Below, piece by piece: positions 3,200 to 62,640 of a DNA stretch of 64,000 nucleotides (the first letter of the stretch is position 1; the number at the start of each line of letters is the position of its first letter). Origin of the DNA: Hamiltosporidium tvaerminnensis FI-OER-3-3. Lineage: Eukaryota > Fungi > Microsporidia. Below the pieces are notes generated by a model. The model did not search any database. It saw nothing but the letters and a program-made list of their open reading frames with translations, and was not told where the DNA came from. Where the stretch lies: contig JAKIMF020000013.1 of the NCBI GenBank assembly GCA_022605425.2, forward strand, positions 496,001-560,000, given 5' to 3'. The position numbers and the translations under genes were made by a program.

Positions 3200-3566
3200 T
3201 CTATGTTATTATATGAGACAGGGGTCTCAGATTACGGTCTGATGCCAAATTCGGTCCGCATCAGCTTTTAAGGCATTTGTTTGCTGCTGGTACGTAACGT
3301 AATTTTTTGTAAAGTAAACGTTTTTAAAATATTCTAAAAAACTGCTTACTTATTGCATTCCTCTTTTACTTCTCGGTGTCGAGAATAAACAAATGAAAGT
3401 TTAGCATTTGTTTCTTTTAATCTGTTGTGACCCGGATTATAGGGGATTGGCCTGTAGATCTAGTGTGGTTATTATCCCACAAAAATGGCAAAAATGGATT
3501 TCACACCAATTATAAGCACACTTTGCCGACCAAATAGTTTTTAATGTAATTAATCTCTCTTCACCC
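3200..3566 (-). mobile_element. Structured non-coding repeat, type-2 copy J (3' limit uncertain)
   Basis: Reverse complement of 3345-3566 aligns with 56935-57156; first ~110 nt also align with 17310-17420; hairpins at 3214-3229, 3239-3264 and 3370-3385. Confidence 0.7.
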
Positions 3567-3941
3567 GACAAAATAAAATACAAGATATAATTTTCAAAAT
3601 GTACCATTTAAAGATATTTGATTAATTTTGAAATCTAGTATGTTATACTTAGAAAAGATATGAATATGTAGACTATTAAATATATTTTAGAAAATTTTAC
3701 TCTAAGATTGAGAATTTCTTATTTTGAAGCAAAAAAATTCTCATTTTTGAAATGTCCGTTTTTTTTAACATATATTGGGTTAAAAAGTTTTAATTTAATT
3801 TGTTTTTTATAGAAATTTTAAAAATTTTAATAAAATTGGTATTCATTTTTTAAATAAATTATTGATTTTAATTAGAAAAAAAATCAAAAGTGTCAATGAT
3901 TAAATTAAAAAAATATTTAAGTTGGTTTGAGTTTCTAAATA

Positions 3942-9060: not shown

Positions 9061-11249
9061 ATTTAAATCCAGTTTGGTTTAAAAAGTGACATTTATTCAT
9101 ATTTCTACGGTTTTACATTTTTTTAAAATGAAGATTTTGCACAACCATACATCAATTTTGTATTAATTATATTTTTACATTACTTACACTTTCATTCTAT
9201 TAGAATTTTATATAAGTTTTGAATTGAAAAATCATGACGGAGCAATACAGGTTAGATCCGTGAAAATGTATAAAAATCTGTTACATTCTGATATATTTAC
9301 AAGTATGTAAGTGTTTTAAATCACCAAATAATTTATAAAAAAATGAATATTAGTGCAAATATTTAATAGTTTATATTTAAGAAAATAATTAATAAGAAAA
9401 CTATAAATTTGAAAAACTTTTATATTATGAGAAATTCATAGCTTAAGCATAGAAAAAACACATGATTTTATTAAAATATTTAAAGGATTCAGAAGTGAAT
9501 AAATTTTATAATGCGTAAATCGTGATAAGCCTAGAAAAAAACTTGACTTTAACAAATATTGAAAGGATTCAGAAGAGAATAAATTTTTAATGTGTAAATC
9601 GTCAAAATGCAAGGAGAATTAATATTTTTTCAGACAAGCAAATAAATAGAAATATGGTGAGAAATTAAAAAAAAGAAACAAAACTAACATACTCTTCAAT
9701 GCAGAAAATATAGCCATATACGGAAAAATGAAACAAAATATGAATGAAGAGTCGAAATTTAAATAGACATTAAGGTGGCTAAACCAGTAGAAGAAAAATT
9801 AAATCACAGGGAAAAATTTTCTTACTAAATAGATTAAAATTTTATTTTAGTATTTTTGTATTTTTAGGTTCATAAAAAAAGGCTGCAGAATAAAAACAAA
9901 AATTTTCTTCAAAAATACCAAAAACATACGTATAAACTATAGCGCAAATATACAGTAAAAGTTTATTAGAAAACATCTATTATCTTTTTAAAATAAAAAT
10001 GCGAGTTCCATGACAACTAGAAAAAGAAAAAAATCGGTGTTTTATTTTAGTATTATTTATAGCCTAAGGCTCATTATATCACTCTTCAATAGAAGTTTCT
10101 GCGAGGAAAACTTTGGATTCTATGAAGAAATTTGATAACTGGCTCTTTATGAATTAACCCGGTTAATGGCATTTCAGGTAACACTCGATTATGTAAAATT
10201 CGGTCTCTGAGAAGGACATTTAATGGTTTTTTGCTGTATAAAAGGCATCAAAAAATAATCTGAAACGGCTGAGCAGAGTTTTGAGGTATAAAATGGTTAA
10301 TTTATATGCACGTTTAGATCGATGAAATAATTGCTTTTATTCAACGAGATTTGGAGGTACGCAAGGTGAGCAGAATAAAGAATAATTTTTGTTATTAATT
10401 TTCTGATTGAGCCATTATCTCGGACTCAGAATGCTTATTAGATAATTCGAATAAATAAGTTTCAAGTAAAATCAAAGCAATCCGGACGTTAGAAATTAAA
10501 AAAATCTGGCTGAACTATATTTATATTTAATAGTTCGCTCTTTGCTTACGGATGGAACACAATCCAACGATGAATCAACGCTTCGAAAAGTTCTAGGCGT
10601 TCCAAAGACAATTTTCTTTTGATTGGTTAGGTTGTCAGCCTCACACAAAATTTCCGAACGAAAGATAGAGAGGGCACCGATGGGGGATCGAAATCGGTTT
10701 TTAGGAAGTAAATTTTGATATCCTCATTACTAGACCATTGGCGAAAGCCGAACTATATAACCACTAAAAGAATTGAAAGCTTCAAAAACTCTCGATTTGA
10801 TAAATTGAAGTGTGCATGCATGAATTTCATTCATCTCAGCCACTTAAAGATGGTGAGAATATTATACAAGCTGCGCAGGTATTTTATGCCGAGACACACA
10901 CAAAAAGAGTTAAAATCGATTTAAAACGAAAACATGGGGGATCAAATTGTTTTTTTGCTCTTCTTGAGGTCACATAGAACAAAAGTTAACTCACTGCTTT
11001 AGGAACGAAGAGACCAAGGAAACCATTTAGGGTTAGATAAAAAATGTCGCAAAATAATTTTCCTGAGGCTTTAGTCAAGAATATGAAGTTTCCAGGTACG
11101 TATGCTAATAAAACTTATAGTGTACAAAAGTAGAAGTTAATTCTAAAATTACTCGAGTTTATAAGCTTTTTAACCCAATTTAGTTATGTACCATCTAAAG
11201 ACGTCGAATTCAGCTAATTCGCACTATGAAAAATCCAAGTTTTAGATTA

Positions 11250-13235
11250 TAGTATGGCCCAGAGTTACCAGATGTCATATATAATTAATATCCTAGACCA
11301 TTTATACTGAATACTCTCTAGGCTACATTGTTTTATTTTATTCGTCTAAGAATACTCTTAATTGGCTTTTTTAGAAAAAATATGCCGGATTAATGATATT
11401 TAAAATTTCTTAATCAAAAAACTTACAAATTTCTTAACTTTTTGAATTGATATTTTTGTTTTTTTATGTTATGAAGGTAAACCACACCTGTTTACTTAAA
11501 ACTCGAACCGACATTTTTGATACTAAAATATATTTTACGCAGAGGAACTGACTAAATAGTAATCAGCTTTGGGCCAAATTTTTAGGAGTTAAAAAAAATC
11601 TTTAATAAAAGCCGTTAACTTTGGTGTGAAACGCCAGCGTTGCTAGCAGTAAATTTACTAGAGGCAGTTAAAAATGAGCAAATAACACCAAAAAATCCCT
11701 ACGTAATGTCGCTCATGAAAAGATTACAAAAAAAACTTGAAATCGACATTGATCGATATTAAAATAGGCTTATGATTCCTTGACAATGCTAATTTTCTAA
11801 ATTCCGTAGAGAACATAACTTTTATGATCAAACTTCACATTATTAACGCAACACATCAATATTAGAAAGTTCAATGGCATTAAGACTCAATTAAAATTAC
11901 AGAGAAGAATTTAAGAAGGATCATGATGAAAAATAGATGGTTTTTTCAGCTTTTTGTGCAGTATAAATCACCTGAACTTCGATTGCAACAAAGAATTACA
12001 ACGGAAGCAAGAGAAATCGAGTACATGTTTAAAAGCAAGCATTATCTGTTGTTTTTAATAGACTTTCCATTCAAGATAGATGTATTATTTTTTGAATGTT
12101 TACAGGCAAAAGTAAAGAATTTATCTAAAATTCATAGGCTTGAAATCAATTGAAAGAATTCAGGTTTGTTCTAAAAGAAAAAAGGCGAATTGATTATTTG
12201 ACATAAAAGAGATAGAAAAAAATTGCTCAGAGAAGCTCATTAATAAAAAAAAAGATATAAATGAACAGAATACAAAATTTCATGCAGTAAATTTAGCAAA
12301 GAAATTGCGTTCCTGAAATTTTGCAAAACGCATTATATAATTAACGTGAACTGAAAAGTTATCGAATAAATTTCGGCGTTCTCTATGTTTGATGATGTGT
12401 CAGATGATTTGAGAAATCTGATACACCCAAGAACAAAATGTTATTAAACCTGTTATCAGTATAAATTTACTTGGAACAGTCATTCATATCAGTAAGATTC
12501 AACTGAAGTAGATCTTATAATTATTATATTATCTTGACTAAATAGTGAAATACCTATTAGAAGAGCAGCAATCTTAAAGGTTTACAATAAAATGAAATAG
12601 ACTCATTGATAATAAAAGGTTTTTTAAAACAAAGTATAAACTATGAGAAAAGAATTATTAACGGATTTATATCTCAAAGTAAAAACAATTAATTGAATTC
12701 GAATTTAAAAAGTATAAAAATTATAATGAGTATGTGTTAGTGGCTTTTCAAATTCGACATGAAAAAGAACATTAATCTGAGTAACAAGATAAATTAGGCT
12801 AAAATGAAGGTACAAATGTGTTTATAGATAGAGGTCTAAATGGCAACACTGTTAAAACTTTGGTTTTCTGCTTTAATTCAGTGAAATGTTAAAAATATTT
12901 TAATTATAATTATGAAAGACGCCAAAATGAAGTCAGATTTTTGCATTTCTTTATAAACTTGATAGAAATTCATGTCTTTTAAACACATTAAAGGTATTTC
13001 ATTTTAAAAAATCCTAGAAATATAGTATGCTGGCTAAGATTAGACAAAATAGAAAATCACATACTAATATTTGTAAATATAGATCAGAAAATTTTTTAAA
13101 GAAATAAATGAATGAGATTAAATTATTTTAAACCGTAAAATTCCATAACATTTACTTCGAATGAAACTAAGTCTAAGACTTATGAACTCATAAATTTGTT
13201 TTTATTATAGATGTAATATAGATATAATTACCTTT
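11250..13235 (+). mobile_element. Highly decayed non-LTR retrotransposon (same family as 59440-61660)
   Basis: Collinear DNA matches such as AGAAGAGCAGCAATCTTAAAGG vs AGACGAGCAGCAATCCTCAAG and TTCTCTATGTTTGATGATG vs TTCTCTATGTTAGATGATG; ORF 11923 (SKHYLLFLID...AKVKNLSKIHRLEIN) aligns with RT TKHLLFIDD...EKVKKFVNNLEFKIN. Confidence 0.75.
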
Positions 13236-14596: not shown

Positions 14597-14670
14597 GCCT
14601 CACTAGCTCAGTCGGTTAGAGCATCCGGCTTTTAACCGGGGGGTCGAGGGTTCGAGCCCCTCGTGGGGTA
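14597..14670 (+). tRNA. tRNA-Lys (anticodon UUU)
   Basis: Acceptor GCCTCAC/GTGGGGT, D arm GCTC/GAGC, anticodon arm CCGG-CTTTTAA-CCGG, T arm GAGGG-TTCGAGC-CCCTC; T-run Pol III terminator follows. Confidence 0.97.
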
Positions 14671-15046
14671 TATTTTTGTAAATAAAATTATTTAAATCTA
14701 CCAATTTGCAGAGTATTCTTTTTTATGTGCTTTTGGTATGTTAGTGGAATTTTAAAATTGCTTTTAAAGAAATCGAAATCAGAAATGTTTTTTTTGTAAT
14801 TAAATCAATTATTATTTAATTTTAAAAATGTAGTGGTTAAAGAGGTAGAAGAAAACATATAAAAATGGTAAAAAATATTTTTATCCAGCATTTTAAATAA
14901 ATAATTTTTAAAATGTATAATTCTAATCTTTAAAGCATTTCTTATGAATTTTAATGGTTGAGTAAAATTTCATATCAAACTGTTTTTCTATGTTTCAGAT
15001 TTGAAACAATAAAAATGACAAAAAGAAATTCGAAATTGAAAGAATA

Positions 15047-16530: not shown

Positions 16531-17309
16531 AGTTAATTTATTTTTTTAATGATATATTATTGATTCTATTTGTTTTAATTTCTTATGTTTTTCTAAAAAT
16601 TGTATATCATTACACTTTGAATATACTTTCCTCATTTTTCTTTTATTTTCACTAATCTAAATTTCCAACAATTTTCATAAATAATTATAACGAACATTTT
16701 AATTTAATCAATAATTCTCTCTTTTCTACGAAACATTCGATTTTTCGATATTTTTTTTTGATTTTTTTATTAATAAAATTTAAGATAATCGAGTAAATTA
16801 AATATTGTCATACACTGAATCAAAAGCCATTTATTACTATGATAGTATATGATTCAATAAAATATACAATATAGTATTGTATAGTTTCAATGATTATTTC
16901 TTTAAATCTAGCTTTGATTTATACCATAGATAAAAAGATAGCAGAATTTCATATAAATTTACGACTTTAAACACATACAACTATTTTTATTGTGTTACGG
17001 AAGTAATACTTTTGATTTATATTGTATCATTATTCAATGATTTAAGCAGAATATATCATAAGATAAACTCTAAAATTCCTTAAAATCTTAATATATTTAA
17101 ATACACATCTTATAAGTTTAATATCTTATTACAATTATACAGACTCTTAATTCATATATTTATTTGATTCGAATTTTAAATTATTTATATAAATTTTTAT
17201 ATTCAACCAATCATATTCAAACCACGTAAATATATTTATTTATCATGAATTAGATAGTTTATACAAATTATTGTACAATTTAAATATATTTTGTACAAAT
17301 TTTTAATTA

Positions 17310-18037
17310 GGTGGAGGGAGGATAACCACATAAAAAACTTTCTGCTTGGCAATGAGTGTATGAAACTGATGTGAGGTCATTTTTTGGATTTTTGGTGGGA
17401 TTACAACCACACTACATCTTCGGTTGTTTCATGAGAGTTGTTATGAGGAGAAGAGGTCTAAGAAATGGAGAAACTTTTTCTACAAATTTATTTGTAGTTT
17501 TTTATGTAACCAGATTGCAGACCGCAGCTGAACATGTAGGTAATTGCCATGTAAAAGCATGGAAACCTAGCCTTGCTCACTCGGGTTAGATGACTTAGCG
17601 CCTGGGAGATAAAACAAAAAACTATTAAAAGCCGGGATAGCTAAGTAGCAGGTTATACCTGTTGGTATGACATTGCACTGTCTAGGTGAACCCCATGTAA
17701 ATCTCTGAAATATATCTTAGCTAGAAGTTTATTGGGTTCAGAAAGTGTAGAGTAAGTGGGAATGCTGCATAGTCTTGGGGGAGCCCAGGGGGGCTTCGGC
17801 CTTCGATCACACTCCATGCAACAGACATTAGAAATCCGGGCAACTGCCTCGCCTATTAATTAGGTTCTACACACCTGGTAGATGAAAGGCTTTGGGACGT
17901 AGGTATCGCAGGGGTTACTGATGGAGTTTTGGGGTAGCAGTTATTTATGTTAAACCTAGAACTGCGTTAATGTCATGAAAACAAATATAACACTTGCCAC
18001 TATTTTAAAAAAGATGTGATATTTTTAAATAAAAAAA
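17310..18037 (+). mobile_element. Structured non-coding mobile element, type-1 copy A (young; 20-bp TSD)
   Basis: Near-identical to 36121-36850; flanked by TTTTGTACAAATTTTTAATT at 17289-17308 and 18040-18059; ends AATAAAAAAA; GC-rich relative to flanks; many nested helices. Confidence 0.9.
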
Positions 18038-18150
18038 TCTTTTGTACAAATTTTTAATTTATCAAATATAAATTAAAGAAAAAAAAGATGAAACAAACTT
18101 GAAACAAGTTTCAAAAACAAAGAATAAAAAAACAAAAACCTTTGTTTACA

Positions 18151-20521: not shown

Positions 20522-20689
20522 AATGAATTCTTTTAAGATTTTATTTTTTCTTATTTATATTTAATAATCATTTCTATTATTTAGTTTCTAAAATAACTTA
20601 AATTCTTATTTTTTTTTCTAAATTTTTTAATTTATTTAATATTAGTATTTTTAAGAATAAATTCATAAAAAACTTTTGATTAAAAATTA

Positions 20690-21470
20690 GTGGAGAGAAA
20701 AAGAACCACGTTACTATCCATCTGCTTAGGTATGAGTATGTGAAATTGATGTAATAAATCATTGTTTGTATTTTTTTGTGGTATGAAAATGACACTCTAT
20801 TTTCGGTTTTTTAGATAGTAATTGGATTAGAAAGTGGAAAGTCTAAGATTCTATAAACATTTATCTGACATTCCATTTTCGGTTTTTTAGATAGGAATTG
20901 GATTCGAAAGTAAAAAGTCTAAGATTCTATAAACATTTATCTGACATTCTATAATAATTTTTTATGTAAATAGATTAGAAACTAAGATTTAGCTTGTAGT
21001 AATTAATTATGAAAGTATTTCACGTAACTTTGCTCATTCTGGTTGAGGACTGACGACTAAATGATTTTAAAAAAACATATTCTTTATAAAAAAGAGAATA
21101 CTAAGTAGCAGGTTATAACTGTTGGTATGGCATTGCAAACTCTAAGTGAACTCCAAATAGGCCGATGAGTTGAAATTTAGCCAGAATTATATTAGGTTCG
21201 GAAAGTGTAGCGTAAAAGAAAATATTTCTGGTTTTATATGATTCTAATATGATTTTTGACCAACAATCACACTTTATGCCTCGAAAAATGAGAAATTTCC
21301 TCGCCTGTTAATTGGTTTTTAAAGATCTTTTAGATGGAAGGAAAGGATGTATAGGTATCATAGAGCCTATCGATGAAATGTTGAGAAAGATGTTATTTAT
21401 GTTAAACCTAGAACTGCATTAATGTCATGAAAGTGATCTAAAGCATGCCACTTTATTAAAAGATGGAATA
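20690..21470 (+). mobile_element. Type-1 element, diverged copy C (contains an internal 76-bp tandem duplication)
   Basis: GTGGAGAGAAAAGAACCAC head; CTAAGTAGCAGGTTATAACTGTTGGTATGGCATTGC at 21101; GTTATTTATGTTAAACCTAGAACTGCATTAATGTCATGAAA at 21392; collinear with copy A. Confidence 0.88.
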
Positions 21471-21523
21471 TTTTTCATTTAAATGTTAAAATGGATTTCG
21501 ATTTTTAACGTCGATTTTTCTAA

Positions 21524-24674: not shown

Positions 24675-25357
24675 ATTTTAATCGTGTAACATCATACTGA
24701 TGTTTTGCACATGTTTTATTGTTCTATAGCATTAGTATAGTTCTAAAGCTAACATAAATAACTGTTTCTTTAACTATATCGATACCTCAATTGTACCCAC
24801 ATCCCAAAGTCTTCTAAAAAAAATGTATAAAACCTAATTACTAGGTTATAAAGTTGCATGTAGCATGTATATATTTGTTACATGGATTGTGATCTTACGC
24901 AAATTCCACTTTGAGCTCCATCAAAACTATGCAAATTCTTAGATAGTCTACTTACTGTTTTTCTAATATACTTTATGTAAAGATATATCTCAGCGACTTA
25001 CATGAGGTCTACTTAGACAGTGCAAGTGAAACTCACATATATATCATGCTACCTGGCTTTCACAGCTTTAAAGATTATTAATTTTATTTATCTCGTGCCC
25101 TAAGTATTTTAATCCAAGATAATAGTTCGAAGTTTCATACTTTTAGGCAATTGCATATAATTTCAGCTGCAGTCTGCGATCTTGAAACATAAAAAACTAC
25201 AATTAAATCTGTAAAAAAAGGTTTCTTTATTTCGTAGACCCTTTTCTTCTAATACAGAGCCAAAAAATACCCGAAAATCTAAGCAATAATCTCACACCAA
25301 TTGTTTATATTCAATGCAAAGCGGATATTTTTTCACGTGGATATCTTCTTTCTACTT
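24675..25357 (-). mobile_element. Type-1 element, diverged copy F
   Basis: Reverse complement gives GTAGAAAGAAGATATCCACG head, GTAGTTTTTTATGT, TTGCACTGTCTAAGTAGACCTCATGTAAGTC, CCTAGTAATTAGG, CTTTGGGATGT and CAGTTATTTATGTTA in the same order as copy A. Confidence 0.85.
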
Positions 25358-27918: not shown

Positions 27919-28009
27919 TCTATCAGAATGTATTTCCTTATCGAATATTTTAAATAAACAGCGAATATTTCTAATTATCTTATTTCTAAACAATTTTTTA
28001 AAAAATTCT

Positions 28010-29402
28010 GAGTTAAACCCATTTTTACATTTTATGAATTTCTCTACTCCTTTACCACCATCTTTTCTTCTTCTAAAATCAAACCTTCGTTTATGTTTAT
28101 TTTCGTTTCACGTCATCTGGTTCCTCCTTCTGAAAATGGGTTTTTTTTGTTTTGAACTTAAACACCATCTTCATCTCTACTCGAAAGTTTTAAGGGTGGT
28201 GTTGGTTCCTAAAACATCTCTGCTCACATAATGATGCTCTCTCCCAGCCCTTTTCGGCATTAGGTTCTGACTCAAGACCTCTTCGTCGCTCGATGAAAAT
28301 TGTTTCGACTGTCTTCTCAGTTCCTATCGACTGAATACATGCCTCTAAATTATGAGGTATTTCTAGCCTTTTTAAGTGTGACTTATTGTATTTTGTCACA
28401 ATTCTATTACAAGTCATTACATAATAAATTATATCAGCCCTACATTTATAAATCGAACCCAAGCCATAGGCTAGCAGGTCATACTTTTTTGGTTTTTCGA
28501 TTTCAGCTATTTGAAGCGAATCTTGGGAAGTGATTCCTTCTTCAATGAGTGTTATCTTATTCTTCTTATCTAAAATAAATATGTCGGGTCTGTTTTTCCG
28601 AATTTTAACATCAGTTTTTATTCTGGTGTCTACTCTTATCTCGGCATACTCATTATCAAAAATTTCTTGAATTGAGTGACTCCTAATTCGTTTTGAGGAC
28701 CTAAACTTATATCTATTTGGGTGAAGTAAGTGTATGCATCTTAACACTTCATTATGCCGTCTGGTGTAGTCATGACCTAGCATTTTTTCACATCGAGTTG
28801 CTAGATGATCCACAGTCTTACCAGACTTCCCGCAATGTTGACAGATCCCATCTGCTCTCCAGAATACATTTATATCCTGGATATAGCAGAACACAGCTTC
28901 TTTGCGTGATCTAATATTCCCTCTCTTTGGCCATCTAGAAGAGTCACTAACACTCACAAGCTCATTTTTCCTTGCATTATATAACTTTGAATGGAGTTTA
29001 CGTTTTTCAATATATAATCTTGTAAGTTTAGCTTCTTCTAAACTTTTCTTAGTGACTTTTTCTATCAACCTGTACTTTGCTTTTAAGAAGCCTTTTATTA
29101 GTGACTTCTTTTATCAACCTTACTTTACTTTTAAGAAGCCTTTTAGTAGTGCAAGATGGGTTTTATTATTATTCTTCACCTTGAGGATTGCTGCTCGTCT
29201 AGTTGATATTTCTTTACTTTTTTCCAGAAAATCCAAGAGTTGCATAAGCATATGTTCGCTTCGCAATTCAACACTATGTAGGCCTCTTTCAAGTTCTGTT
29301 CTAGGAAGATACAAACGTTCTTTACATTCTGTGCGAAGATGTATTTTATTCTTCACCAACACCGTACGCACTGCATCATCTAACTTAGAGAACTCAGCCG
29401 AC
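28010..29402 (-). mobile_element. 5'-truncated non-LTR retrotransposon (zinc knuckle + REL endonuclease end)
   Basis: CQHCGKSGKTVDHLATRC, RHNEV, RPDIFILD, K..KYD motifs; closely similar to 60280-61600; RT thumb remnant RLYLPR..RGL. Confidence 0.93.
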
Positions 29403-32699: not shown

Positions 32700-32734
32700 A
32701 TAATTATATTTGACAAATAAAAATAAAAAAATTC

Positions 32735-33019
32735 TTATTTAAAAGTATTACATCTTTTTAAAATAGTGGCAAGTGTTATATCTGTTTTCATGACATTGAT
32801 TAATAGCTTTATTTAAAAGTATCACATCTTTTTAAAATAGTGGCAAGTGTTATATCTGTTTTCATGACATTGATTAATAACTTTATTTAAAAGTATCACA
32901 TCTTTTTAAAATAGTGGCAAGTGTTATATCTGTTTTCATGACATTGATTAATAACTTTATTTAAAAGTATCACATCTTTTTAAAATAGTGGCAAGTGTTA
33001 TATCTGTTTTCATGACATT
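32735..33019. repeat. 74-bp tandem repeat x4 (element 3' end plus ~10 nt of flank)
   Basis: AGTGGCAAGTG at 32765, 32839, 32913 and 32987. Confidence 0.95.
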
Positions 33020-33665
33020 AACTCAGTTCTAGGTTTAACATAAATGACTGCTACCCCAAAACTCCATCAGTAACCCCTGCAATACCTACATCTAAAGATT
33101 TTTACTTACGAAATCCGTGAAACGAATTTAATGAGCAGGGCGTTGCCCTGTGTACATTAGTGTCAGTTAGATAGAGTGCAATTAATTTTTAAACCCTTTC
33201 CGACCCTCTCCCGATACTATTCAGCATTTTCACTTACTTTAAACCTTCGAGCCGAATCGACTTAAACTCATATATCTCTTTGAATAAATAGATCTATCAA
33301 GACTTTTAAAACCCATATAATCAGGTATAACCTGTTACTAGCCCTCCTTGGCTATTTAAAAGGGGCATTTTTGGATCTCTTCACTGCTCCAATTTTTCAA
33401 CTCTAGTTACTCAGCCAAAATTTACATGACAATTACTTGCAATTTCAATTTTTTTTACAATCCAATTGCATAAGAAACCACAAACTAACTTATTAGAAAA
33501 TGATAAACCATTTTACAGTTCATATTTCTTGTACAAACTTCCGTAGAAAGCCTAAAAATATAGCGTGGTTTTCATACCACTCAAAAATCCAAACAATGAT
33601 CTTCACACCAATTTCACATACTCATTACCAATCAGATTATTTTATTGTAAAATATTTTCTTCATT
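32735..33665 (-). mobile_element. Type-1 element, copy D (divergent body, near-identical 3' end reiterated 4 times)
   Basis: 33015-33091 is almost the exact reverse complement of the A/B 3' region; CAGGTATAACCTG at ~33323; AAAAATCCAAACAATGA..CACACCAATTTCA at 33583-33616. Confidence 0.9.
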
Positions 33666-35523: not shown

Positions 35524-36120
35524 ACATTTGAACTAAAAAAATAAATTTCTATTTTCATAAAATTTTGTTCCTTTTATTCTTCGCTTTCTTCCTTCCTTTG
35601 TAGTTAGTTATTCTTTTATTTTATATCTGTTTCTATTTCACTTGTAATTGCTTCTTCCATTCTATCTTTGTCTTCGATTATAATTTCTCTTTTATTGTTT
35701 TTTCTTCTTTCCTTTATATTTGGTTTTTCTGTCTTTTCATGATTTCTTTTTTAGTCTCTAAATATTTTCTAGCTTCTAAATTTAACCTTTGTTTCTTCTC
35801 TTATTTAAATCCACTTTGTTTTCTATTCTTTTATTCCCTGTACTTCTTTTTTTTCTTATTTATATTTTTTAAAGATTAATTTATCTAAAAACGATTTATT
35901 AAACAAGTTTTTGATAAATTAATATAAATTAAGATGATGATCTTTAAGATTAAACGATAAAAAGATTAATTATTTATTTAAAAAACCTAGATAAAATGAT
36001 GGGTAAATCTTTAAGATAAAATGATAGTATAATTAAACATTTTTTTAAATTGAAGTGTCTTATATTGATTTTATCAAAGTATAAATCTTTAAGATAAAAT
36101 GATAATAAAAATAAATATTT

Positions 36121-36850
36121 GGTGGAGAGAGGATAACCACATAAAAAATTTTCTGTTTAGCAATGAATCTATGAAATTGGTGTGAGGTCATTGTTTGGAT
36201 TTTTGGTGAGAATACAACCACACTACATCTTCAGTTGTTCCATGGGAGTTGTTATGAGGAGGAGAGGTCCAAGAAATAGAGAAACTTTTTCTGCAAATTT
36301 ATTTGTAGTTTTTTACCTAACCGGATTGCAATTCGAAGCTAAACATGTAGGTAATTGCCATGTAAAAGCATAGAAACCTAGCCTTGCTCATTCGGGTTAG
36401 AAGACTTAGCGCCTGGAAGATATAAAAATATGAACTATTTAAAGCCAGGAAAGCTAAGTAGCAGGTTATACCTGTTGGTATGACATTGCACTGTCTAGGT
36501 GGACCCCATGTAAGTCTCTGAAATAATCTTAGCTAGAAGTTTATTAGGTTCAGAAAGTGTAGAGTAAGTAGGAATGCTGCATAGTCTTGGAGGAGCCCAG
36601 GGGGGGGCTTCGGCCTTCGATCACACTCCATGCAACGGACATTAACGAACTCCGGGCAACTGCCTCGCCTAGTAATTAGGTTCTACACACCTGGTAGATG
36701 AAAGGCTTTGGGACGTAGGTATCGCAGGGGTTACTGATGGAGTTTTGGGGTAGCAGTTATTTATGTTAAACCTAGAACTGCGTTAATGTCATGAAAACAA
36801 ATCTAAAACTTGCCACTGTTTTAAAAAAAGATGTGATACTTTTAAATAAA
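36121..36850 (+). mobile_element. Type-1 element, copy B (young)
   Basis: Aligns end to end with 17310-18033 with scattered substitutions; same GGTGGAG start and TTTAAATAAA end; no clear TSD. Confidence 0.92.
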
Positions 36851-36899
36851 GCATAATGAAAATTTAAATCCAAACATTTGCTTTTTTTTTCTACATATT

Positions 36900-39839: not shown

Positions 39840-40500
39840 TTCATTTAAGACACGGGTATATATTATACTGTTTTATTGTCATAAATGGCTGTCCTAGCCT
39901 TTGAATAGCTGATTTAATTTCAACACGGGAAGGTATCTCTCTTAAACCTACACTTCTAAGCTTTATTTAAAAACCTATATTTGGACATTTAATAGACGAT
40001 TTTGTTGCATAGTCTTCATTGATGTTTTTTGCTTGGCGTATGATACCTGATTGAAATCAACCTTTAGATATTCTAAGACTAGGAAGTTCCTACCTCCTCT
40101 AAACTTATAGAACAAAATAAACTTCTAGATAAGCCATTTTTCGGCTATTCGAGTGGATCTACTTAGGTGTTGAAATGACATACCTACTATCTAATCCGTA
40201 ACTTAGAATTCTTGGATGCTTTGAACTGTATGTTTTTATATGTCTTCCATGCATCAAATCTTCTGGCTCGAGTTGACTGGCTAGGTTTTTTTATTAAGAG
40301 GGTAATTGTTTACATGTTCATGTGGTTCGAAAGTTAACCACATAAAAAATCCTAAGCTTTTTTGTGGCTAAACCCTATCTATTTTGCGACTTAATTCTCT
40401 TTATCAAAATTTCCATGAAACAACTAAAATTTACTATTGTTTTCTGCGCCTACACCTCAGATAAAGTACATGCAATGTTTTTTTATGATTATTTTACCAA
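39840..40500 (-). mobile_element. Type-1 element, most diverged copy E
   Basis: Reverse complement retains collinear islands GTTGTTTCATG, TTTTTTATGT, TGAACATGTA, AAACCTAGCC, GGTATGTCATT, CTAGAAGTTT, TAGTCTT and TCGTCTATTAA. Confidence 0.72.
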
Positions 40501-55492: not shown

Positions 55493-56934
55493 AATAAATG
55501 ATCATACTTAATATCATTTTATAAACTTACAAATTTAAATATTGGAGGAGTAATTGTTGCCAAAATATTCAATATATATACCCCAATATTTTTATTTATT
55601 TTTTTACACAGATATATTTTTTTACTTACTATTTAATATAGTTGATATCATGTGTAAATAAGAGTTTCAACCGTTCATGGTTTTATCTCTAATTTATACT
55701 ACTATTTTCTAATTTACGATTTTGATTATAGAATAAAAATTTATAGCCATTTTTATTAGGCAAAAAGTAATATTTTAATCTATTGTTTCAGATTAATATT
55801 ATTTATTAATTTTTACAACATATAACTGATATTAAGATAAAAAACTAATCAGTAATGTTTTTATTGCTTATTTTTTAAAAAATATTATTATGAATGTCAA
55901 TAATGTTTTTTTAATTTATTTTGATGATATACAAGGCATATTTAGGCTTTATGTACAAATTTAGCAATGAAATCAAATAATATCAAATTTTTAAATTACA
56001 TATTGATTAAATACAATTTATAAAGAATTATATCATTAAAAATTTTAAGATTTAGCCTTTGTATTTGGTTGTTATTGAATATTATTATTAAAAAAAATGA
56101 TTTAAATAAAAACAATTGTCTCTCACTATTTTAAATTTATAAGAATTTCTAAGGATTTAAAAAAACATGAACTTTTTGATTTTAAATTGTCTTAAATTCT
56201 ATACGAAAATAAGCCACTATTTAGGCATTGATTTTTACCTTGGTTGTTTTTATATAATACCTATTTTTATTATTTATTTGGCTTTTTATATCAGAGATTT
56301 TGTCAATTCTTAAGTCGCTGTTTTATTTGAAATTTTTTATCTAATTAAGGCTTAAAAATTTAAATATAACTAAAAATACGTTACCTGGTAGCTTAGAAGT
56401 CAAATATATTTGGTTATCTCGATACATCTAAGCCCTTCTCAAACTATGTATGTTCTTTCCTGGTATTCAACCTCTTTCGGTCTTGAATATTAAATTTGTA
56501 GGAATAAAAAGAAATATTTCGATTATGTTTTAACTAAAATATAATAAATGTGGGTCCGAGGTGTTTATTACATCTGTACTCTTTTAGGTAAATAAAAATA
56601 AGATTTTGAAATATTATGCTACCTTCTCAAAAAAAATGAAAATTCATCTTTAGATAAAATCTAATACGTTGACACCTTATTCTTACTTTCTTGGTTCTTA
56701 GTTCGAATATCAGAAAATAATCAACATTATAGAGTTAATTGTTATTTCACCATGTGTCATCTTGCCAAACTTCCGATCCACGGTAGAAAATGAAGTCTTT
56801 TTTCTGAATTTCGACATCTATTTTCATTCTGATATCTATTTTGATTTCGCGGATCAATTTTTAAGAATTTCTTAGAAAAAGTGACTACTTGTTGTGTTTT
56901 ATTATTTCATTTATATTTCGTTACAAAATTTATA

Positions 56935-57160
56935 GGGTGGAGAGAAGATAACCACATTAAAAACTATCTGGTTGGCAACAGATGCATAGAATTAATGTGA
57001 ACTTCTTTGTTGAAATTTTAATGGGGTATAATCACACCGAATCTATAGGCAAATCCCCTATATTGCGAGTTACAACATATTAAAAGAAACAAATTGAAAA
57101 CATTCATTTATTAATCTGCGACACCGAAAGGTAAAGAGTATAGGAATAAGTAAGTACAAA
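56935..57160 (+). mobile_element. Structured non-coding repeat, type-2 copy G (3' limit uncertain)
   Basis: GGTGGAGAGAAGATAACCACATTAAAAAC head shared with type 1; body (AATCCCCTATA..ATTAAAAGAAACAAAT..CGACACCG..AATAAGTAAG) shared with copy J. Confidence 0.78.
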
Positions 57161-57823
57161 AATTATAAATCATACCTGAAGCTTTTTTTTGTGTTGTTTT
57201 GCCCTAAAATTATTTAGCCTTGGCCATTTAATTATTACATACTATTCGGAATTTAGACAATTTTGGTACTTTCCTTAGCACCCTGAAATACATTTCTATG
57301 ATAGAGATAGCAGAACACTGTTTCATCACGTGATTTGGTGACTATTTTTTTCATCCATTTTTTTATTTTTCAATACTCGTTGCTTTTTTATTTATTGCAT
57401 TATATAACTTTGAATGTAATTTTATATTTTTTTACATAAATTTTCAATTTGAACTGTTTTTAATTTATCATAGGAGTATCTCTTTTCACCTTTGATTTTA
57501 GAGTTTATAATGAGATATATCAAAACAAAGTGTGTTTTGTAGATAACTTCATATATTTATTCTTTTAATTCCACTCTTCTGGTTGGTAATTCCTTATTAT
57601 TTTTAAAAAAAAAGGTTTTCCAATCAAAACCTGTAGTCCGATTCCAATTTCAGATATGTGCGGATACGAATGCAGCTTACATTTTTAAGATGCCCCTCAC
57701 TTTTGTAAACGCTGCAAGATAATTAAAAAAATTTAAATATTTCAAACTATCTTACAATTTTTTTTATACCCATTCATCAACATTTTTTTAAAAAAAAAAT
57801 AAGAAACAAGTGCAAACCCTTCG

Positions 57824-59439: not shown

Positions 59440-61660
59440 CGTTTCTTGGAAGTAGAAAATGTCGTTCAGCTTAAGGTTGAAAGACAAGGTTTAATTTCAG
59501 ATAATCAGTTATGAGCGGTTAGAGGGATGTAAGAAGCGAAAAAACAGGCTCTCTGAATATTGCCTTAAATAAAGAGTATGTAAACAATCTTAAGATAACA
59601 TGAATTAATGTTAAAAAAGCTTACTATTCAATAGATCATGCTTATTTAACTCAATTTATCTGAAATAAATATTTATTTGGTTAGATCATGAGATTTATTG
59701 AGGTAATTATATCAAAATGAAAAATTGATATATCAGTAGGGCCTGAAAAAATCATGAGCAAGAAGATTCAGAGAGGGATTCTGCAGGGAGATAGTTTGTC
59801 ACCATTGTTTTTTGTGTTGTGTATGGATCCATTGAGCCGAAAGCTTAATGAAAAATACACAAAAGTTACATTACAAACAGATGCAGAATCTTATTTTACT
59901 AAACATCTCTTGTTTATTGATGATCTTAAGCTCCTTGAAAAAGATAGCCAAAAATTGGAAGATATGTCGGAGAAGGTTAAGAAGTTTGTGAATAATTTAG
60001 AATTCAAAATAAACAAAGAGAAGTCACCTACAAATGACCTTTGTTGTGGAGAATCCGCTACTCTTCTTAGAGGTGTTAGTGTTTACAAATATTTAGGAAT
60101 AATAGAAGATAGCAGAGGAATCCCAACACGTAGCTCATTTGAAGAAGTACAGAGCAAACTTATATCAAGAGTTGAAAGACTTTGTCACACTAGATTAAAC
60201 GCAAAAAATTTATTTTCTGCAATCAATCAACATGCGATATCGTTAATCAACTATCACATAGGAGTACTTCGATTGAACCGGCTGACTTCTCTATGTTAGA
60301 TGATGCGGTGCGTGCGGTTTTGGTGAAGAATAAGATACATCTCCGCCCAGGATGTAAGAGCGTTTGTATCTTCCTAGAACAGAACTTGGAAGAGGCCTAC
60401 ATAGTTTTTAGTTGCGAAGCGAACATATGCTTCTGAAACTTTGGATTGTCTGGAAAAAAGTAAAGAAATATCAACTAGACGAGCAGCAATCCTCAAGAAG
60501 GAGAAAAATAATAACCCCCATCTGGCACAAATAAAAGGCTTCTTAAAAGTAAAGTACAGGTTGGTAGAAGAAGTCAATAAGAAAAGTTTAAAAGAAGCTC
60601 AACTTGCAAAACTATATAACGAAATAGAAAAATGAAAACTCCATTCAAAGTTATATAATTCAAGGAAAAATGAGCTTGTGAGCGTTAGTGACTCTTCAAG
60701 ATGGTTAAAGAGAGGAAATACTAGGCCACGAAATGAAGATGTGTTCTGCTACATCCAGGCTAGAAATGTATTCTGGGGAGCAGATGGTGTGTGTCAACAT
60801 TGCGGGAAGTCTGGTAAGACTGTGGATCATCTAGCAACTAGATGTGAAAAAATTCTAGGCCATGATTACACTAGACGGCATAATGAAGAGGTTAGATGCC
60901 TACACTTACTTCTTCTAAATAGATATAAGTTTAAGTCTTCAAAACGAATAAGGAGCCACTCAGTTCAAGAAATTCTTGATAATGAGTATGCAGAGATAAG
61001 AGTGGACACCAGAATTAAAACTGATGTTAAAATTCGGAATAACAGACCCGACATATTTATTTTAGATAAGAAGAAGAATAAGATAACACTCATTGAAGTA
61101 GGAATCACTTCCCAAGATTCACTTCAAATAGTTGAAACTGAAAAACTTAAGAAGTATGACCTGCTAGCCAATGAGTTGGGTCTTATTTATAGGTGTAGTG
61201 TTGAGATAATCCCTTATGTGATGACCTGGGACGGTATTGTGACAAAATACCATAAATCTCATCTTAAAAGGCTAGAAATACCTCATAATTTAGAGGCATG
61301 TATTCAGTCGATAGAAACTGAGAAGACAGTCGAAACGATTTTTATCGAGCGACGAAGAGGTCTTGAGTCAGGACTAAATGCCGAAGAGAGCTGGGAAAGA
61401 GCGTCAATAGGTGTTATTATGAGAGCAGAGATGCATAAACACACTTATACTTCCTTTAAAACAAGTGAGTAGAGAGGATGATGGTGCAAAAAATAATACA
61501 CTTTTTATTTCAGAAGGAGGAATCACGTTAGATGAACCGACGATAAACATAAATGAAGAATCGGAGTTATAGGAAGAGAAAGACATTGTTGAAATGGTGG
61601 AAAGAATTATTTAAAAGAGAGAAAATTTGTTAACCTATATTTTAATTAAATAAAACTTTT
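59440..61660 (+). mobile_element. Non-LTR retrotransposon (RT + CCHC + REL endonuclease; R4/Dong-like architecture), 5'-truncated and disrupted
   Basis: GILQGDSLSP, HLLFIDDLKL, YKYLGI; CQHC..DHLATRC; RHN; RPDIFILD..E.GI..EK.KKYD; stops and frameshifts between the ORFs. Confidence 0.95.
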
Positions 61661-61934
61661 TTTGTATTTTACACAATGATTCGCTTATATTTAATAAGAT
61701 ATGTATTATATTTCTATTTATAAAGAAAATATAAGACTTAAAATAATAAACACCACTCAATTTATTTTTTTTTATTGGATATATTACATGTATTATGTTA
61801 AGAGAGTAATATTTAGTTATGAAGTTTATTTTAATTAAATTTTAATATGAGGTAAAATATAAAATTTAAATAAATTAATTACCATGTTTATATTTAAAAA
61901 CAGTATCATTTACTCAGAAAATTATATTTTGTTT

Positions 61935-62640
61935 GAAAATACCATCTTTTTTAAAAAAGGAGCATTTTTTATATTGTTTTGATGACATTAACGGTTTTCT
62001 AGGTTTAACATAAATAACTGCCCTCCAACTACATCATAGGTATTATCTAAACTACCAAAATTCTAAATATTTATATTCATAATGTGTGTGGAGCCTATTT
62101 AATAAGCGGAACAATGTCTTGGGGGTTCAATGTCCGTTATCTGGTGTGTGATTACAGTTATATATCCACCTTAGCTCCTTTATCAGAGACCAGCAGCAGT
62201 TCTACTTACTATAACCCTTCAGAACAAAATAAACTGCTCCTAAGATATTTCGTAGCAATCTATCAGAGTTCTAGTTAAGGTTTCAATATAATGCCAACTG
62301 CTATATCCTGCTTTTCTGCTTTAAAGGTTTTTAATTTTCTGTATCTCCACATATCAAGTCTTATAACCCGATTATGCAAGGTTACATTTCAATGCTTTTA
62401 CCTGGCAATTACCTACAAGTTAATTCTTGATTTCCAATCAAAGTACATAAAAAACCAAAAAATAAATTTTTGAAAAGGCCTCAATATTTCGTAGACCTTC
62501 TCTTTCTCCTGCAAACACTCATAGAACCACTGAAAATTTAGTTTGGTTTTTTTCACCAAAAATCCAAAAAATGATTCAATTACAGATTCAACCCAATACT
62601 TGGTAAACGGTTTATTTTTAATGAGGTTACATCTCTCAAT
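61935..62640 (-). mobile_element. Type-1 element, diverged copy H
   Basis: Reverse complement gives GAGAGATGTAACCTCATTAAAA head, TCATTTTTTGGATTTTTGGTG, GGTAATTGCCAGGTAAAAGCAT, AACGGACATT and GCAGTTATTTATGTTAAACCTAGAA..GTTAATGTCAT. Confidence 0.88.

Follow-up and report, generated by a model that had tools for sequence, protein, structure and literature searches.

A repeat of ~727 nucleotides (nt) that recurs through a 64,000-nt stretch of the genome of Hamiltosporidium tvaerminnensis FI-OER-3-3 (contig JAKIMF020000013.1, positions 496,001 to 560,000; hereafter, the window) is best explained, with a probability that we put at about 0.8, as a non-autonomous, non-coding retroposon of the non-LTR (long terminal repeat) type, similar to short interspersed nuclear elements (SINEs) in its lifestyle but not a classical RNA polymerase III (Pol III) SINE. 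Its most likely driver is a long interspersed nuclear element (LINE) of the same genome that carries a reverse transcriptase (RT) and a putative restriction-like endonuclease (REL), referred to below as the RT/REL LINE. H. tvaerminnensis is a microsporidian parasite of Daphnia magna and a model for why some microsporidian genomes are large. The assembly that we searched comprises 21.64 Mb in 17 contigs, from which ~290 kb in 49 loci were sampled in detail; copy number and target preferences are therefore rough.

An initial annotation of the window, made from its letters alone, had listed seven copies of the repeat that together occupied ~8% of it. BLAST with one of these, the young, full-length copy A, and an nhmmer profile built from young copies recovered all seven with slightly refined limits (Table 1), which confirms that the repeat family is real; together the copies make up ~5 kb, or 7.8% of the window. 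The perfect 20-bp direct repeat described around copy A (TTTTGTACAAATTTTTAATT) is indeed exact on both sides, and the 3′ end of this copy reads AAATAAAAAAATC. Copy B is 92% identical to copy A, and the old copies in the window retain 62-69% identity to the consensus of the young ones. One old copy (20689-21479, plus strand) contains an insertion at 20820-20900, part of which repeats the adjoining sequence and aligns as a tandem duplication.

Outside the window, the family is large and young. Searching the whole assembly with copy A returned at least 1,428 first-look candidates; all of the 40 that were scored are full length (from positions 1-3 to positions 725-730) and 95-97% identical to copy A, and they are spread over 16 of the 17 contigs. 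Thirty young copies diverge from their own 730-nt consensus by 1.0-3.0% (mean 1.6%), individual copies measuring 727-731 nt, and so low a divergence speaks for a burst in the very recent past. Depth summed over the element exceeds that of single-copy flanks ~2,000-3,500-fold in two DNA-like public runs, a ratio that does not equal copy number, and in ~260 kb that had not been chosen for the element we find about one copy per 19 kb. Based on the candidate count, the run depth and this density, we estimate the family at roughly 1,000-3,000 copies, corresponding to a few percent of the genome. A run deposited under a third organism code likewise carries the element at high depth, which is therefore not restricted to the sequenced isolate. 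An exact metagenome search with a 21-mer from the conserved tail yielded a single contig, AT-rich and devoid of the element, that was matched by chance, and a search of the public runs for empty-site alleles found no contig spanning the insertion site, because the assemblies break at the repeat.

The termini of the young copies are uniform. They begin with (A)(G)GTGGAGGGAGGATAACCAC and finish with GATGTGATA(C/T)TTTTAAATAAA; in some copies nothing comes after this, in others G, GT or as many as 11 variable bases. The element runs from GTGGAGG to AAATAAAGT, and in all young copies the 3′ end is constant at TTTTAAATAAA, with 0-11 variable bases added. The start variant AGG co-occurs with the tail variant T, and there are therefore at least two source lineages. 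Target-site duplications of 12-23 bp were detected by script, with one mismatch allowed, in 25 of 31 copies, and duplication length varies overall between 9 and 23 bp. The shortest of these values comes from a young copy that is 5′-truncated at consensus position ~363, with a normal 3′ end and its own 9-bp duplication; further 3′-anchored partial copies are also present. The mosaic copy of the window carries an array of element tails (32734-33019, minus strand) with a 74-nt period, 3.9 units and 99% matches according to Tandem Repeats Finder.

Because of the variable duplications, the fixed 3′ end, the truncated copy with its duplication and the tail array, we consider the element a probable product of target-primed reverse transcription with occasional template jumps, a mode of insertion of which this combination is the signature. 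The initial annotation had proposed a non-autonomous retroposon inserted by this route, and the youth and high copy number of the family are also in line with that proposal. It had further cited an A-tail as part of the evidence, and here the pattern divides when other young copies are considered: the duplications recur in 25 of 31, whereas the A-tail is a trait of copy A alone, the family being without a poly(A) tail and most young copies ending in AAATAAA plus G, GT or up to 11 bases. These short extensions after AAATAAA often start with GT, GTA or GTAT, and three copies have a GTAyTTCT-like extension in common; they resemble a short piece of the sequence flanking a source copy on its 3′ side that was taken along. 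The tail multimers, for their part, look like repeated re-initiation or template jumping of the reverse transcriptase at the 3′ end of the RNA.

Similar extra tails adjoin copies on other contigs (C15:1273581-1273711 and C1:100383-100473). At the 5′ junction of one young copy (L009:2228-2260, minus strand), an extra partial head of ~20 nt lies between the duplication and the element, which is consistent with a template jump at the 5′ end of the RNA.

A high copy number, the absence of coding sequence and a uniform length would also suit a solo LTR, a miniature inverted-repeat transposable element (MITE) or another DNA-transposon derivative, or a segmentally duplicated, non-mobile repeat. Some copies did spread by segmental duplication: two sampled loci (L003, C1:937042-940770, and L024, C1:1027172-1030900), ~90 kb apart on one contig, each hold an element copy; the two copies agree in their duplication and in their flanks and represent a segmental duplication that includes the element. 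However, the flanks of the other sampled young copies are mutually unrelated, the truncated copies are anchored at their 3′ ends, and the duplications are of variable length. The latter speaks against a MITE, as does the lack of terminal inverted repeats, of which we found none in the element, and it also differs from the fixed 4-6 bp expected of a solo LTR or LTR retrotransposon, whose TG...CA ends are missing as well. A Ty3/gypsy element located near one old copy, the one that we examined, has its own unrelated 187-bp LTRs. This set of explanations is thus largely refuted, and we consider it very improbable.

The element also lacks the hallmarks of genes and of small-RNA-derived SINEs, and the statements of the initial annotation that it has no conserved open reading frame (ORF), no pair of inverted or long terminal repeats and no head derived from tRNA, 5S or 7SL RNA all stand. 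The longest ATG-initiated ORF of the consensus encodes 58 amino acids (aa) and is lost in old copies. A 77-codon open frame is intact in the young copies, because these are so young, and is broken in the old ones; its translation has no match among 5.8 billion proteins. Rfam searches of the whole window at the gathering score, and of the element together with two copies of the shorter family described below at E ≤ 10, returned only a tRNA gene at 14597-14670, which lies outside the elements; the element therefore has neither a tRNA, 5S or 7SL head nor a known ribozyme. By eye, we found no Pol III A or B boxes in the element. A classical Pol III SINE was rejected on the basis of this missing head, the runs of T5, T5 and T6 inside the element (consensus positions 79, 165 and 188) and the 730-nt length of the consensus, as compared to the usual <600 nt. 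An origin from the Daphnia host was considered unlikely, as old, AT-decayed copies speak, if indirectly, for a long residence in the parasite.

Three parts can be recognised in the element: a head of ~110 nt, a GC-rich body and a conserved tail of ~140 nt, which comprises the GUUAAACCUAGAA block and the terminal AAAUAAA. Within the tail, the block CAGTTATTTATGTTAAACCTAGAA, located ~80 bases before the 3′ end, has stayed intact where the copies show ~65% identity elsewhere, and old copies with 62-69% overall identity agree fully in the 13-mer GTTAAACCTAGAA and in the bases directly preceding it; the tail is presumably the part recognised by the reverse transcriptase. The head is found elsewhere too. 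Six matches restricted to the first ~110 bases belong to a second, non-coding family of ~225 bases, in which the shared head is followed by a body of its own that ends in GGAATAAGTAAG. This family, of which we count about nine copies in 286 kb and which shows approximate duplications around at least two of them, is probably a true SINE-sized retroposon. As two unrelated bodies follow one head, the comparison suggests that the head may be a functional 5′ module, serving expression or the definition of the 5′ end; neither Rfam nor a check by eye for Pol III boxes identified this module.

The old copies have decayed in a strongly directional manner. Their GC content is 0.29-0.32, compared to 0.42 in the young consensus; 45% of the sites with G or C in the consensus now carry A or T, against 14% in the reverse direction, and the changes are mainly G>A and C>T. 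They share 50-59% identity with each other and 62-69% with the young consensus, and a five-way comparison, in which the consensus takes the centre of the star, assigns 12 private changes to the consensus and 43-61 to each old copy. The few private changes and the retained GC content therefore indicate that change in the active lineage was several times slower than in its dead copies, as is expected from selection for transposition competence in any SINE-like lineage; the RNA sequence evidently matters, in a manner that this pattern leaves open.

One such manner would be a fold. The initial annotation had described the body of the element as a large folded RNA, and one may suppose that the element is a highly structured RNA with a function (a ribozyme, an ornate large RNA or, in the manner of R2 SIDEs or L1Tc/NARTc, an element headed by a ribozyme), that selection maintains its fold and that retroposition is secondary. 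Folding of the sense strand of copy A gives -207 kcal/mol, 23 kcal/mol below the -184 of 20 shuffles (z = -3.4), whereas its antisense strand reaches z = -0.85; the GC content of 0.42, in a genome of ~0.25, has been kept by the active lineage while the dead copies decayed; and there are two C(UUCG)G-type hairpins, in which a few old copies show compensatory-looking changes when the alignment is read by eye. Yet, with 40 shuffles the consensus gives z = -1.8 in sense and -1.4 in antisense, and copy B -1.5 and -0.2. Only one of eight overlapping 150-nt windows falls below z = -2, and RNAalifold, applied to 14 copies, returns 15 conserved pairs with a consensus energy of -1.8 kcal/mol. We also mapped the 215 pairs of the minimum-energy fold of the consensus onto eight old copies and permuted the 3′ partners within each pair type: pairing is retained in 961 of 1,421 cells against 954 ± 10 after permutation, a comparison of low power as the old copies are mostly neutrally decayed, and double changes that preserve pairing number 78 against 75 ± 7. 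Nor is any Rfam family, ribozymes included, matched at E ≤ 10, and hand threading of the 5′ end as a ribozyme similar to that of hepatitis delta virus failed, the 19 bases between the candidate P1 strands containing no P3 hairpin. A conserved large RNA fold is thus not supported, and a structured RNA as the primary nature of the element is, in our judgement, decidedly improbable.

The retroposon reading calls for a source of reverse transcriptase, and the genome offers plenty. First-look candidates for RT number 466, and among the 150 that were scored, dozens lie in open frames of ~1,250-1,300 aa with near-identical scores. The dominant type is the RT/REL LINE, a 3.8-kb element with a single ORF of 1,256 aa, in which Pfam finds RVT_1 only and no Exo_endo_phos domain and whose RT matches the solved structures of L1 ORF2p and R2. 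Read from the translation, its C-terminus contains CX2CX8HX4C, then RHN and then RPD...E, motifs that are predicted to correspond to the CCHC knuckle and the restriction-like endonuclease of R2/R4/NeSL-type LINEs. As two copies are 99% identical and dozens of frames are intact, this LINE is active now. It starts directly at its ATG, has a 3′ untranslated region (UTR) of ~55 nt that ends in TTAACCCAGAATTTTATTAAATAAA (TTTTATTAAATAAA) plus variable bases, without poly(A), and is flanked by duplications of ~11, 12, 12, 12 and 22 bp. In the window, where the initial annotation had counted it three times, we find it three times together with a 73-base tail fragment.

That this LINE might mobilise the 727-nt element in trans had been suggested from the outset. 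Comparable duplication lengths, the terminal TAAATAAA that both elements have in common, the lack of poly(A) in both and the recent activity of both speak for such a relationship; similarity between the tails does not reach significance. The RT/REL LINE is therefore a plausible driver, on circumstantial grounds. A further shared feature is the 13-mer GTTAA(A)CC(T)AGAA, which in the window is confined to the tails of the element (5 matches, with 0.15 expected) and which is also found, with 1-2 base differences, in every well-preserved 3′ UTR of the LINE that we examined.

Several results weigh against this assignment or against the reading as a whole. The 13-mer was noticed post hoc. In Smith-Waterman comparisons, the 3′ UTR of the LINE aligns with the element no better than shuffled sequences do (p = 0.47 for the element as a whole, 0.16-0.84 for its tail). 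Neither the head nor a longer stretch of the element occurs in any of the sampled LINE or LTR families, and one public RNA run contained zero reads on the stretch, the presence of the parasite in that run not being established. Finally, the genome holds other RT families that might act as drivers, namely a LINE of the apurinic/apyrimidinic endonuclease (APE) type and a 939-aa RT family.

The retroposon would then be as described but mobilised by one of these two, both of which have open frames in this genome; APE LINEs, too, typically make duplications of 11-20 bp at AT-rich targets, and the tail of the element shows no significant homology that would link it to the RT/REL LINE instead. Against this, neither family resembles the element in the sampled loci: BLAST and nhmmer comparisons of the element with 19 RT-bearing loci from several RT families brought up only independent insertions. 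The RT/REL frames of ~1,250-1,300 aa are by far the commonest among the 150 scored RT matches, and it is the RT/REL LINE that shares with the element the TAAATAAA terminus, the absence of poly(A) and the 13-mer. We therefore regard a different driver as improbable and retain the RT/REL LINE as the preferred one.

Two of the 30 young copies (L007:2254-2290 and L025:2264-2300, both on the minus strand) are inserted 13-30 nt downstream of a 3′ end of the RT/REL LINE, which may be due to a target preference common to both elements or to chance, the DNA being rich in repeats. Among the other RT families, a distinct one with ORFs of ~850-940 aa was sampled at L031, L034-L040 and L048, in the last of which a 393-aa ORF precedes the RT; examples are found at C13:59462, C4:7827, C9:2559 and 6055, C14:50722 and C16:184454. 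Its top-scoring copies lie 2.5-185 kb from contig starts, six of them within ~60 kb, and this family may be a subtelomeric LINE.

Taken as a retroposon driven by the RT/REL LINE, the element could propagate as follows: 1) one or a few source copies would be transcribed, most likely by RNA polymerase II (Pol II), which we infer because the T5-T6 runs would stop Pol III and because the element ends in the AAUAAA-type poly(A) signal of the species; 2) the transcripts would be cleaved downstream of that signal, A[A/U]UAAA being located ~20 nt upstream of mRNA 3′ ends in H. tvaerminnensis according to the genome paper; 3) a LINE reverse transcriptase supplied in trans would start the cDNA at, or a few bases past, the terminal AAAUAAA, priming on a nicked, AT-rich target; 4) the second strand would be cut with a stagger of ~11-20 bp, giving rise to the target-site duplications; and 5) template jumps would account for mosaic copies, for the multimers of the tail and for the junction at which the head is duplicated.

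By analogy, the closest systems in lifestyle appear to be the SINEs of Entamoeba and their REL-type LINEs. EhSINE1, EhSINE2 and EhSINE3 are mobilised by EhLINE elements, which are LINEs with a restriction-like endonuclease. As in H. tvaerminnensis, they are non-coding retroposons of ~0.5-0.7 kb in a very AT-rich parasite genome, with target-site duplications, no tRNA, 7SL or 5S head and no long poly(A), and they coexist with an abundant LINE that combines RT, CCHC and REL. The likeness is one of description, and there are differences: EhSINEs share clear 3′ sequence with their partner LINE, whereas the tail homology observed here is not significant, and the H. tvaerminnensis element is longer and has a 5′ head in common with a second family. 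A common short 5′ module in several non-autonomous families of one genome is also known from trypanosomatids, where RIME/ingi, NARTc/L1Tc and SIDER share the 5′ "Pr77" hallmark, which has an internal promoter and ribozyme activity. There, however, the autonomous LINE bears the same head, which no sampled LINE does here, and neither promoter nor ribozyme activity is predicted for the ~110-nt head. The R2 SIDEs of Drosophila are deletion derivatives that keep the 5′ ribozyme and the 3′ UTR of R2 and are site-specific in ribosomal DNA. They resemble our element as non-coding passengers of a restriction-like-endonuclease LINE that lack poly(A) and are primed at a defined 3′ end, but the H. tvaerminnensis element has no detectable LINE-derived sequence and is inserted at dispersed, AT-rich sites. 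With classical Pol III SINEs, finally, it shares non-autonomy, a high copy number, target-site duplications and the dependence on a LINE reverse transcriptase, while its 727-nt length, the lack of a small-RNA head, the internal T5-T6 runs and the terminal AATAAA, which points to Pol II, set it apart.

A literature search, the scope of which did not extend to Dfam and Repbase, brought up neither a SINE nor any other non-coding retroposon from Microsporidia. In protein-based surveys, H. tvaerminnensis is credited with 12 LINE families and no non-coding partners, RepeatModeler-based work does not mention SINEs, and in the 2009 draft small non-coding repeats whose origin was unknown were described as abundant. 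In the genome paper, interspersed repeats make up 39.6% of the genome, and those left unclassified 25.5% of it. Protein-based transposon surveys are blind to non-coding elements of this kind, and the 727-nt family and its ~225-nt relative would account for part of the unclassified fraction, as retroposons that parasitise LINEs and are active in a microsporidian. The consensus can be used for repeat masking and young insertions as population markers, and the element is a possible source of promoters or poly(A) signals beside genes in a compact genome. Going further, one may speculate that the two families are the first LINE-dependent non-coding retroposons described in Microsporidia, that they amount to several percent of the genome and to a considerable share of its 25% of unclassified repeats, that the 110-nt head is a portable expression or 5′-end module like Pr77, and that the GC-rich body is kept by selection for a property of the RNA (its fold or the binding of a protein) that our low-powered tests missed; in this full form, we hold the proposal to be possible but doubtful.

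Table 1. Repeat copies, their parts and other features located in the window, with copies of the ~225-nt family sampled elsewhere. Positions refer to the window unless a locus (L) is named.
Feature	Position	Strand	Basis or remark
Copy A, full-length young copy, 731 nt, 3% off the young consensus	17309-18039	+	BLAST/nhmmer limits 17309-18037
Copy A, left target-site duplication	17289-17308		Exact 20-bp repeat of 18040-18059
Copy A, right target-site duplication	18040-18059		
Copy A, 5′ head, ~110 nt, common to the ~225-nt family	17309-17420	+	nhmmer matches to model positions 4-114 alone; short-family alignment
Copy A, most conserved tail block	17936-17985	+	Includes GTTAAACCTAGAA at 17949-17961
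Copy A, 3′ terminus	18027-18039	+	AAATAAA (holds the AATAAA hexamer) plus copy-specific extension AAAATC
Copy B, full length	36120-36854	+	92-94% identical to copy A and consensus
Old copy, 64% identical to consensus, GC 0.29	20689-21479	+	Big internal insertion relative to other copies
Old copy, 69% identical to consensus	24707-25355	-	
Mosaic copy	32951-33642	-	Identity to the young consensus 92-100% at consensus positions 51-100 and 601-730, 42-72% elsewhere
Three additional tandem 74-nt 3′ tail units, each ending AAATAAAG	32734-32946	-	Tandem Repeats Finder
Old partial copy	39987-40447	-	Model positions 94-561
Old copy, 66% identical to consensus	61926-62629	-	
~225-nt family copy	3313-3568	-	
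~225-nt family copy	56933-57192	+	Approximate 12-13-bp target-site duplication
~225-nt family copies on other loci	L015:397-658, L026:862-1122, L043:1172-1429, L044:2885-3143, L018:372-585, L030:3410-3627		
5′-truncated LINE copy (RT, CCHC and putative REL)	59458-61655	+	89% identical to the young LINE
5′-truncated LINE copy	27994-29400	-	
Degenerate old LINE copy	10748-12636	+	Weak blastn/tblastn matches, collinear with the LINE
LINE tail fragment, 73 nt	14832-14904	+	Duplication of ~11-12 bp
tRNA gene	14597-14670	+	Rfam, 64 bits

The remainder of the window, whose GC content is ~25%, holds ordinary eukaryotic genes, namely those for a septin, TFIIH p52, a UTP15-like WD40 protein and eIF2-gamma, the last being 100% identical to the H. 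tvaerminnensis protein, as well as a gene for a DUF5098 protein. The 73-nt LINE tail fragment, with its own duplication, sits ~160 nt downstream of the tRNA gene.

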